Assembly (NCBI GenBank): GCA_052426225.1
Contig: JBNJNM010000013.1
Span: 1,984,001 to 2,048,000, forward strand
Source: Zancudomyces culisetae HAW-14-8
Lineage: Eukaryota; Fungi; Kickxellomycota
Direction of reading: 5' to 3'
DNA: 64,000 nucleotides
Shown: positions 50,786 through 53,631 of the stretch, in pieces
Numbering within the stretch: position 1 is the first letter of the stretch
How the letters are laid out: each line of letters opens with the position of its first letter
Translations under genes and position numbers: made by a program
The notes under the pieces: model-generated
Told to the model about the DNA's origin: nothing
Seen by the model: only the letters and a program-made list of their open reading frames with translations
Database searches by the model: none

Positions 50786-51145
50786 TTATTCGTTGGCGGC
50801 AAGACCGAATGCTATCCATTTCATAGAAAGAACGCTTGTACCGACATCAAGATAGAAGTCCCAATTACCTGTTCTTATAAAATCGGTGTTTGCCGTACAT
50901 ACACCCTGACAATTTCTTTCCCTACACATTATAAGTGCTCCTGATCCATCAGTGGGGTTAAGGTATTGTCCCGATCTGCCAGGGTTAATGTTATAACATT
51001 GATGTTTTACCATCTGGAGTTCATCCACGACAGCACCAGAAAATCGATATCCTGAAAATATTTTGGCATGCAGGGTTTGGAATTTAGCATTTACTGGAAA
51101 CATAGAAACTACGGCCGCAAGAAGTGCTAGTGTTGACTTTACCAT
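50786..51145 (-). CDS. Chimeric secreted protein: Gly/Tyr-family signal peptide and promoter fused to a subfamily-C crystallin-like domain
   Basis: MVKSTLALLAAVVSMFPVNA (cf. MVKSTLALLTATVATVSVNA) plus TLHAKIFSGYRFSG..KHQCYN..LNPTDGSG..CRERNCQGVC..LSMKW (cf. 44608). Confidence 0.9.
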   Translation of the reverse strand: MVKSTLALLAAVVSMFPVNAKFQTLHAKIFSGYRFSGAVVDELQMVKHQCYNINPGRSGQYLNPTDGSGALIMCRERNCQGVCTANTDFIRTGNWDFYLDVGTSVLSMKWIAFGLAANE

Positions 51146-53631
51146 ATTTGATACTCGAATTTAAATAAAATTGTGACAAGCTAATGCGCTGATGCAGTAT
51201 GAAAATGATGATGACTATAATATGTCTTTTTGTGTTGTATAAAGAAACTTCAATTGTTGATGTACATCTTGTTTCAACAATATTCTGAACGTTTTATACT
51301 TTTTTTTTCTCTCTGTTGCATCTATACTACTCTTGAAACTGCGTAAGGTGACCAACTGTAGTGTTTCCAATATATTTTAAAAAATGTTCTATTTTTAGAA
51401 AGTCGAGAAAGCATCTAGTTTCAAAGCATTAGGCTGAATGAAAGTGTACTAAAAAATGATAATTTAGGTGTTATGTAATTCATAGCTTCTAATTTTAATC
51501 TTTGACAACTTTTCTATATTTGCTAGCCTCGCTTACAATGTAGTGGTATACTAGAACTAGTAATCTTATAAGGTAGTAGAGCAATTTTTTCTGCTCATGA
51601 ATTGTGCCCTTACTGTAACTGGTAGATTGAAAATAATTTTGTAATTTTTATCTAATCAACACTAATTCTGTTCCGATTTTTTGATTTCGCAGTTCCGATA
51701 GTTTAAAAGCATTAAATCCCAACAAGTAAAAACGGTTACGTAATTGAAATAAATAAATAATAACATCCAAATTTGATTTACTATTTGAAAAGGTTTATCT
51801 AAAGCGATATTTTTAATTCATCTAAAAATAACACTATTCCACAAAATTCCCATTAAAAAGAGAAAATAGACCCATAAACTATTATACGTCCTTGAAAAAG
51901 ACGTAAAACCGACAAAATGATCCGTTCCTGCAATTCCAAGGAATACTACTCTTTATTTCGATACTTCCCGACAAGAGGTGGCCATTGGGTTTAATTATTA
52001 GATTGGTAATAATTACAAATCTGTTTTGAACCTAAAATTACGTTTCTATACCTCTCACCAACGAATACACCAGATAACTAACAAGGCCAAAGAGCATTTT
52101 AAAAGACAAGATAGATTTCGAGTCTCTAGCCTCGAGAAAGACAGCACTTACACTAATAAATTATTCAAAGGCATTTTCTATTAATAAGTGAGTAGAATTA
52201 ACCCGTGTTCTAAATCAAGGTGTATTATCAATCACACAATGTGATGTATTCATATGCTAATGATGCTTTCAGTTTACCTAATAATAATGGCCTTAATATA
52301 TCTCGATACCAAGCTATTTGAAAGCTAAAGTAACGTGCAAAACATTCTTACAAAGATAGAAAAGAACTGAATCAAATTGTTTTGAGTGTCTAAATAATAG
52401 CCTTATGAATAAATATTTACATGTTTTCATCAAAAAGAGTACACTTGGCTTATAATTATAAGTAAACAAAGCCCAATAAAGTAATATTAATCTTTATATG
52501 TGGCATGGTCAACCAGGAGACTACCCTAGCCTCATACTTGTTTTTATTTAGTATGTAAATACTGGAGTTTCAATAGTACACTCCAAGGTGTCGGTTCGAT
52601 TTATCGTGAAATTGCGAGTTTTTAATGTTGATCCTTTTTCCTTCAACACTTTAGATTGTTTTTAAAACTTGCTCATTAAATCTTATTTATAAAAAGATTA
52701 AATTACCTAAATTAGAATCATGCGCCTACCTAGTCTTGAAATTAACATGTAGAAGAGCCTAATTAATATGTCAATTATCTCTAAAGGCATAAATATAATT
52801 CGTACTATAATCCCGAAGTGAGGTTAATAACCATATTTGCTTAAAATGGGCCAATCAATTAAGTGCTAGAACTTGAACAAATCTTTCAACCAATAAGAAC
52901 TCGGTACATCTATCACTACAAATATTCTCGAATCACAATTATTTAGGTATATGCAACATATTCAACAAATTATAAATGCTGATTACGATATAATTTAAAA
53001 TAGAATATGCAATTTCAAAAAAAAACAAGCGTACTTCGGGTCATCTAGTACATGATAAATACTTTACAAACCCTGAATGCCACCGGTACCGTTTATACTG
53101 TGATATGTCTTTTTTTAGATTTCACATTTCCCTCAAAAACCGGAATAGATTACTAAAAATAATTATTTTTCGCTTTCGTTCAAATGCAAACGACCAAAAA
53201 TATTGGTTCTCTAAGTAAAAGCCTTTGTTTTTCTTTAATTTTTAGAGAACATCAAGGTAAAAGCATTGACATTAGGTATCATAAAACAAGTTATCTTATT
53301 ACATGTTAACTCTGATAGCTATTAACACACTTATAAATATAATGATCTAAATATAGTTCTACTTTCTGAGTGAGCTGATAGAGGAATGAATTTGTCATTG
53401 ATTCGGATATATTGACAATAGTTGTAATGTCATTGTTACCAGCTATCTAGCAATTTCGACTAGTAACTTTTAATTCAATACACCATTAAACTTACAAACA
53501 AGAAGGTCACAACAAAAAAAGTATAAAAAGTCCAGGTTTTTTTCAGAATCCTATTCTATACAATTCAAAAACATTTCAACTGTGTCCTAGATAAAAGGTG
53601 TTTAGATTAAATAGTCAAAAAATAAATTAAG

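Follow-up and report, generated by a model that had tools for sequence, protein, structure and literature searches.

This locus of Zancudomyces culisetae HAW-14-8, a fungus of mosquito guts, raises the question of how one small gene came to begin like one secreted protein family and to continue like another. The window, by which we mean the whole stretch of 64,000 nucleotides (nt) that was analysed, corresponds to C13:1984001-2048000 (contig C13) of a 27-Mb genome, at roughly 30% GC. The initial annotation had described a gene of 119 amino acids (aa) on its reverse strand as a product of promoter and signal-peptide capture between a Gly/Tyr (GY) family and a family of crystallin-like proteins, here called the C family. 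Profiles and base-level alignment agreed with this description: the gene is a chimera with a GY-type promoter and signal peptide, a C-type body and 3' flank, and a single sharp junction between them. We place a probability of roughly 0.85 on the explanation that a single illegitimate join made the chimera family, which was later maintained, copied and spread to chromosome ends. The parts of the locus, in window coordinates, are as follows.

50786-51145, minus strand: chimeric coding sequence (CDS), 119 aa, intact, single exon, from the open reading frame (ORF), starting MVKSTLALL...VNA
51080-51145, minus strand: CDS nt 1-66, of GY origin, encoding the signal peptide MVKSTLALLAAVVSMFPVNA plus the two residues KF
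50786-51079, minus strand: CDS nt 67-360, of C-family origin, encoding one predicted beta-gamma-crystallin-fold domain with four conserved Cys
51146-52272, minus strand: GY-type 5' cassette (promoter plus 5' untranslated region, 5'UTR), probable in its most distal part, from profile and pairwise homology
50478-50785, minus strand: C-type 3' flank that came along with the domain, from blastn and the C profile

A matching 119-aa single-exon model is annotated in the independent assembly GCA_001969505.1 (P0002, AX774_g950).

Homology on the two sides of the junction

Every genomic copy of a GY, C or chimera gene was collected, and profiles were made from this collection. Each of the 13 full-length chimera loci was matched by an nhmmer profile of 30 GY loci, over a span running from about -1140 to nt +60 relative to the start codon, with E-values of 4e-60 to 3e-86. 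The profile of 16 C loci matched the chimeras from nt +69 onward (E-values 7e-47 to 1e-92), and in most copies the match reached ~300 bp beyond the stop codon, while in three it ended earlier. Alignments to the GY profile and by blastn stopped at nt 59-66 in each chimera copy. Both parent families are also represented within the window itself by a neighbouring pair of genes, against which the chimera was aligned directly.

45607-46011, minus strand: GY-family gene, 134 aa, with signal peptide, pro-region ending KR, acidic spacer and Gly/Tyr tail
46012 to about 47160, minus strand: 5' cassette of this GY gene
44608-45003, plus strand: C-family gene, 131 aa, with its own signal peptide, a His-rich linker and a crystallin-fold domain

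In blastn, window positions 51975-51080 aligned to GY gene 45607-46011, over its first codons and the sequence upstream of them, and positions 51077-50478 to C gene 44608-45003, over its body and 3' flank. The alignment of the chimera with GY2 spanned 931 bp at 60.6% identity and ended at window 51080, and the alignment with C spanned 637 bp and started at 51077. As in a fusion gene, each parent family was homologous to one side only of a single breakpoint.

The extent of the upstream homology was resolved with profiles of GY segments. Segments -150..0 and -400..-150 gave colinear matches in 13 of 13 chimera loci, segment -800..-400 matched five of 13, the window copy among them, and segment -1400..-800 used alone matched none of the 13. 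Chimera lineages A and B, the two deepest intact ones, shared homology over -1117 to +529, and in the best GY/chimera pairs homology extended to about -1150. The cassette would accordingly measure ~1.1 kb; its homology is well established as far as about -750 (window 51895) and probable from there to about -1120. The GY homology of ~750 bp upstream that had been proposed was thus borne out by significant colinear segment-profile and blastn alignments. The distal block cited for it, GAAAA..GTAAAA..GACAAAA..CCG.TCCTG, can be read directly at 51894-51930 and at 46736-46771; its originally given exact spacing found no match under a strict pattern, owing to small indels between these copies.

At base level, the last GY-homologous bases are ...GCT-xxx-TTC, up to nt 66, and the C homology starts with CAAACC at nt 67, which places the junction to about 3 nt either way, with microhomology of at most 1-2 nt. 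This point lies two codons past the predicted signal-peptide cleavage site VNA (cleavage sites were called by eye using the -3/-1 rule). The chimeric protein would be secreted with cleavage after VNA, giving a predicted mature N-terminus of KFQTLH. Two parts of the C protein were lost in the swap, its signal peptide (MR.SSYTLAIQLLSATQTLLVSG) and its His-rich linker (HC-His tract-GSSRP). One and the same junction was present in 17 of 17 aligned copies, which include the copy from the independent assembly and the decayed copies on contigs C21, C14 and C22, the last representing the basal lineage. Because these 17 copies share the junction, it is real DNA of single origin.

An assembly artefact or a chance likeness was also considered. 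Weak alignments may look better than they are in AT-rich DNA, and upstream of about -800 the GY segment by itself was nonsignificant; against this, profile E-values went down to 1e-86 and 1e-92, and the junction recurs in the 17 copies on many contigs as well as, in identical form, in gene AX774_g950 of GCA_001969505.1 (contig LSSK01000075). We regard this explanation as refuted. The closest copy in GCA_001969505.1 was only ~90% identical to the window copy at the DNA level, and the analysed genome may come from a different isolate, or that copy may be unrepresented in it.

The promoter of the window copy carries three GY-type blocks.

51389-51398, minus strand: CTAAAAATAG within the palindrome TTCTAAAAATAGAA, at about -253
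51293-51298, minus strand: TATAAA box, at -153
51250-51259, minus strand: CAACAATTGA block, the CTTCAATTGTTGATG of the initial annotation, at -114

The motif blocks named earlier were recovered, with CTTCAATTGTTGATG at 51248-51262 and the TATA block at about 51290-51302. The window copy keeps all three at GY spacing (-253, -153 and -114), and they are variably kept among the other chimera copies. The CAACAATTGA block (CAACnnTTGA) was exact in 26/30 GY, 10/13 chimera and 0/16 C promoters and is a candidate start-site or 5'UTR element. The MADS-like CTAAAAATAG block (CTA(A/T)4TAG) was exact in 25 of the 30 GY promoters, seven of the 13 chimera promoters and none of the 16 C promoters; we take CTA(A/T)4TAG to be the MEF2/Rlm1-type MADS-box consensus, which the block fits as a candidate site only. 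The TATAAA box has an equal position in most GY promoters and was exact in 6 of 13 chimera copies, and C promoters have their TATA box at about -104 to -116. Judging from these elements, the promoter architecture was clearly exchanged, and transcription of the chimera may be under GY-type control; to place the domain in the GY regulon, as initially proposed, overstates the case. A genome-wide count of TTCTAAAWWTAGAA (37, vs. 4 for a control) was rejected as evidence for a regulon, most of the 37 being copies of the family itself.

Direction of the swap, origin and spread

A DNA tree of the domain, with members of the wider crystallin-fold family as the outgroup, placed the chimeras in one clade (support 99/95) within the C genes. 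The chimera clade was sister to C3, the C-gene lineage represented by locus L081, with support of 83/74, rising to 97/92 with C2 added. A single clade of all C genes was rejected by the approximately unbiased (AU) test (p = 0.011). The alignments behind the trees are short, and the paralogues in them may be subject to gene conversion. Lineages C1, C2 and C3 all have the C-type signal peptide, and because the chimeras nest within C genes that all carry it, the GY-type 5' end is the derived state. The direction is therefore the one originally proposed, with a GY 5' end placed onto a C domain.

The tree of the 5' cassette was less directional. Here the chimera cassette forms one of ~9 deep GY spokes, the tree cannot be rooted by itself, and the polarity of the 5' half was taken from parsimony alone. 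This leaves room for the reverse polarity, in which the chimera layout is ancestral, the C genes later took another 5' end, and the GY genes arose from a Gly/Tyr body put behind the cassette. Starts of the MVKS, MIKS and MFKS type do occur in other crystallin-fold members, including a Furculomyces protein beginning MVKST. The nesting of the chimeras inside C genes with a common C signal peptide and the AU result argue against the reverse polarity, which would also require two replacements from unknown sources vs. one from known sources; in addition, the cassette has ~9 deep lineages with GY cargo against one with crystallin cargo. Dozens of wider-family members, here and in other Harpellales, each have their own signal peptide. 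We consider the reverse polarity very unlikely.

The placement of a GY 5' end onto a C gene can be followed further towards its source. The chimera 5' cassette grouped with GY lineages L053/L055/L058 (support 89/88), and L055 (GY) and L081 (C3) form a convergent pair on contig C11. Because these relatives of its two halves are pair partners, both halves of the chimera point to one pair lineage. A second line of evidence comes from contig C22, where C22:43409-43697 (minus strand), with near-identical copies near C22:192428 and C22:372519 (L089, L051), represents a basal, decayed chimera lineage. This basal chimera fills the C slot of a pair and is convergent with a GY gene. The segment C22:41936-43608 is colinear with window 46366-44729 from the GY promoter and gene across the full intergenic region into the C body, as far as the junction; beyond the junction stands an inverted GY-type 5' cassette, and the GY/C-body pair is flanked by an inverted repeat of the GY cassette.

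These observations suggest a route by which the single join could have occurred. One non-homologous join would have set ~1.1 kb of upstream sequence and the first 66 coding bases of a GY gene ahead of the body and 3' flank of a C gene, replacing the promoter, signal peptide and His-rich linker of the latter. The C gene would have captured, in place, an inverted copy of the 5' cassette of its convergent GY neighbour, possibly through a deletion between two copies of the pair in opposite orientation. We give this in-place origin somewhat better than even odds. The resulting unit of about 1.7-1.9 kb would then have been held under purifying selection and copied to other loci, later entering a multigene block that spread among chromosome ends, of which the window copy would be a young subtelomeric duplicate.

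The chimera family comprises ~20 loci genome-wide, nine of them intact (L001-L007, L009 and L011) and 11 decayed. Among the decayed loci, L008 and L010 begin with GTG instead of ATG, three loci (L010, L012 and L013) are interrupted by an in-frame stop at codon 31, and the remainder include copies at C21:1987 kb and C14:229 kb, three on contig C22, and a fragment on contig C3. In the younger chimera lineage, all ten of ten copies lie <=62 kb from contig ends. The upstream kilobase of the window copy is 97-98% identical to those of the copies on contigs C23, C21 and C9. Between the old intact lineages, synonymous divergence (dS) was 0.36-0.74 and the ratio of nonsynonymous to synonymous divergence (dN/dS) was 0.21-0.33. 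Given dS of up to 0.74 at such a ratio, the fusion is old and its protein has been kept under selection, so that purifying selection acted after the fusion, as in a functional gene. The locus had initially been presented as a new gene, which does not hold: the chimeric family is old, the window copy is one of its young subtelomeric members, and what is recent at this locus is the duplication only. In a word-based protein search, which covered proteins of 0.55-1.75x the query length, the chimera protein matched only proteins of Zancudomyces culisetae.

A copy of this age could also be an inert by-product of subtelomeric duplication that is unexpressed or unsecreted. The decay of 11 of the ~20 chimera copies would fit such a fate, as would the dN/dS of recent copies, at 0.3-1.0 with very few changes behind the figure. 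The window copy has, on the other hand, an intact ORF and all three promoter blocks, it retains the four Cys and the fold-defining residues, and purifying selection is seen over the old intact lineages. Inertness of the window copy is therefore unlikely in our judgement.

Several points weigh against a single in-place join followed by maintenance and spread. The group rejected by the AU test was named after the tree had been seen, the outgroup branch is long, and the outgroup root lies, suspiciously, among near-identical C1 copies. Support for assigning the two halves to one pair lineage is moderate, at 83/74, 89/88 and 92/87. The C22 copy is a long-branch pseudogene, and it could instead be a C gene that was converted later by a chimera, as an alternative to the in-place origin. 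The reciprocal product, a C 5' end with a GY body, was not found, as 18 of 18 copies of the C 5' region were C loci. About half of the chimera copies are decayed, and the perfect MADS-like site or the TATAAA box is gone from about half of the subtelomeric copies.

With respect to the surroundings of the copies, C8:24000-62000 contains a tandem subtelomeric unit of ~17 kb, in which chimera copies stand 17.1 and 12.6 kb apart. The unit contains a chimera, a MIKSV-type crystallin gene, a GY gene, a C gene and a MVNILL-type crystallin gene. The C8-type gene block is present in inverted form in the window at 44600-54100.

Cassette cargo and possible later exchange

The cassette had also been proposed to be reusable. 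Searches for the cassette DNA and for the conserved start region returned only GY loci, chimera loci and two loci on contig C23, and no third cargo was found behind the cassette genome-wide, the unrelated cargos being GY and C only. The two C23 loci, C23:574715 (plus strand) and C23:624191 (minus strand) (L090, L091), have a GY-type cassette and a start reading MVKTILLFF..., which is cut at about codon 14. They are inverted copies ~50 kb apart, and the element that cuts them is a repeat unit of ~410 bp with >100 genomic copies. As candidates for a third cargo they were rejected, since their cassettes are simply interrupted by this highly repeated element. The proposal of reuse consequently reduces to one fusion event with one new cargo.

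The same survey bears on whether the 1.1-kb segment is a mobile element, carrying a promoter and a signal-peptide exon, that was inserted independently before both gene types. The 5' limit of the cassette is fairly constant, near -1120 to -1150, and the region is rich in repeats and retroelements, both of which a mobile element would explain. Set against this, no free cassette copies were found, all of them fronting GY cargo, C cargo or belonging to the repeat-cut copies; all chimeras have one junction and form one clade, which indicates one event and not repeated insertion; and no terminal repeats were noticed, although no formal search for them was made. We consider independent insertion very unlikely as well.

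Later exchange through the cassette was considered at L083 (C15:282600-286000; gene start about C15:284128), a GY pseudogene whose ATG has changed to ATA and which contains frameshifts. Between -1100 and -160, its distal upstream region shows ~95% identity to the corresponding part of chimera L011, and these loci have a divergent neighbour gene in common. The proximal promoter, signal peptide and body of L083 show about 60-75% identity to anything else, and this part represents an old GY lineage. L083 was examined as a possible donor lineage on account of its ..FPINA signal peptide and was rejected, as only the distal upstream region is chimera-like and the rest is equidistant from everything. 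From its sequence, L083 looks as if a chimera locus and a GY locus had recently undergone ectopic exchange by way of the cassette that they share. A broader idea is that the promoter and signal-peptide block, after its in-place capture from the convergent neighbour, acts as a recombination module among secreted-protein genes and still mediates exchange between GY and C genes. We think this rather doubtful; if true, cassette swapping would be a means of recurrent rewiring of when and where secreted proteins are made in gut colonisation.

The crystallin-fold family, comparable systems and neighbouring genes

The domain received by the chimera had been called crystallin-like, and this is correct at the level of the fold. 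An AlphaFold2 model gave confidence scores (predicted local distance difference test, pLDDT) of 88-96 for the larger part of residues 21-110 and of 83 in one block. The top Foldseek matches listed were all beta-gamma-crystallin-fold proteins, with weak E-values of about 0.01. Alignment to crystallins using VIA-align gave a Z-score of 9.2 and a root-mean-square deviation of 2.1 A over 78 residues, spanning residues 23-114. On this model, the domain is predicted to be a single beta-gamma-crystallin fold, i.e., a double Greek key. An alignment of 22 family members showed four conserved Cys together with Y51, S58, G69, G81, S107 and W110; disulfides are predicted to join C74 to C79 and C50 to C83. 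With respect to the signature [YFW]xxxx[YF]xG, the first motif reads F29-x4-F34-x-G36, and the second reads C74-x4-C79-x-G81, with Cys in place of the aromatic residues. Pfam gave no match for any of the eight small secreted ORFs in the window, the chimera included, and a sequence-profile search of the PDB returned chance matches only, with no crystallin among them.

A profile search of 1.84 billion representative proteins gave 39 matches, ten of which were identified as coming from Zancudomyces, Smittium mucronatum, S. culicis and Furculomyces. Because the ten identified matches are all from Harpellales, the family appears to be restricted to this group. Within the genome, the dozens of wider-family members each have their own linker in addition to their own signal peptide. 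Family members in the window lie at 28997-29422, 49147-49485 and 53632-54054, all on the plus strand, and the family has >60 loci genome-wide, without Pfam annotation. The member at 49147 is truncated relative to its paralogues L071 and L074, which are 141-150 aa long, and the Smittium mucronatum protein P0004 contains three tandem domains. Two further crystallin-fold genes, C11:716033 (minus strand) and C15:282559 (minus strand) (L092, L093), are the divergent neighbours of L011 and L083 and have a signal peptide starting MVKSAILS. As MVKS/MIKS starts are common in the secretome, likeness of signal peptides at the protein level is by itself weak evidence of homology.

Single-domain beta-gamma-crystallins of microbes resemble the domain in having a double Greek key, here predicted over ~90 residues, and a first motif of the FxxxxFxG type. 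Physarum spherulin 3a (1hdf) and the Neurospora abundant perithecial protein APP (5z6e) were among the Foldseek matches, and Z-scores to lens and Ciona (2bv2) crystallins were 8.4-9.2. The domain differs from these microbial proteins in lacking a match to Pfam Crystall, in its CxxxxCxG second motif, in its four conserved Cys and in being detected in Harpellales only.

The fusion event itself is of a known kind and reveals no new mechanism. Stavrinides, Ma and Guttman reportedly described terminal reassortment of bacterial type III effectors in 2006. As in that process, a promoter and an N-terminal secretion signal were joined non-homologously to an unrelated C-terminal cargo, and in terminal reassortment the new secreted protein falls under the regulation of the donor. 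The present case differs in that it involves a eukaryote and an endoplasmic reticulum signal peptide instead of bacteria and a signal of the type III secretion system, with donor and recipient adjacent and a single event. The likeness implies no link of the chimera to host interaction. The term "terminal reassortment" is in use, for example, in passages of PMC3136466.

The lens of conserved signal regions offers another comparison, in that the cassette here fronts unrelated products much as the signal regions of certain animal peptides do. Precursors of frog-skin peptides and conotoxin superfamilies have a conserved "secretory cassette", in which a signal (and pro-) region stands before unrelated mature peptides. 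That cassette is a separate exon that has been reused many times; in Zancudomyces there is no intron at the junction and there is one new cargo, and the cassette includes ~1.1 kb of promoter. In Drosophila, jingwei and Sdic are chimeric new genes made via retroposition or via duplication-deletion fusion of neighbouring genes. The Zancudomyces chimera is like them in that it combines parts of two parents, recruited 5' regulatory sequence and was then amplified in tandem or by segments, and unlike them in its in-frame join at the signal-peptide boundary inside a convergent pair. Literature searches for an earlier description of the chimera family or of the fusion event found nothing specific.

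At this locus, the birth of a gene through capture of a 5' end is unusually legible for an early-diverging fungus: a single genome shows the two parents, the exact breakpoint, a probable intermediate in place and the amplification in subtelomeres. It is also a natural experiment in which promoter and signal peptide were swapped on a secreted protein and a His-rich N-terminal linker was lost, and it draws attention to a secreted crystallin-fold family that was detected in Harpellales alone and is otherwise unannotated.

The arrangement of the parent types in convergent pairs, which the initial annotation had pointed out, is real. The C gene 44608-45003 (plus strand) is the convergent partner of the GY gene 45607-46011 (minus strand), and a further pair, decayed on its C side, is found elsewhere in the window.

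23825-24283, plus strand: second GY gene in the window
about 24937-25233, minus strand: decayed C-like copy, convergent with this GY gene

The C proteins (44608-45003 and loci L014-L029) have a His tract of variable length directly behind the signal peptide and an extra unpaired Cys. Variants of the tract include HCHHHHHHHHG, HCHHHHHG, HCRHRHHG and HCGCNSM, and this linker is lost in the chimeras. For the GY protein, the word-based protein search, over the same range of query lengths, returned Zancudomyces matches only. One GY member, L054 (C8:79936-83310), is 189 aa long and contains two modules of pro-region, KR, acidic spacer and GY tail, which suggests a repeat precursor processed by Kex2.

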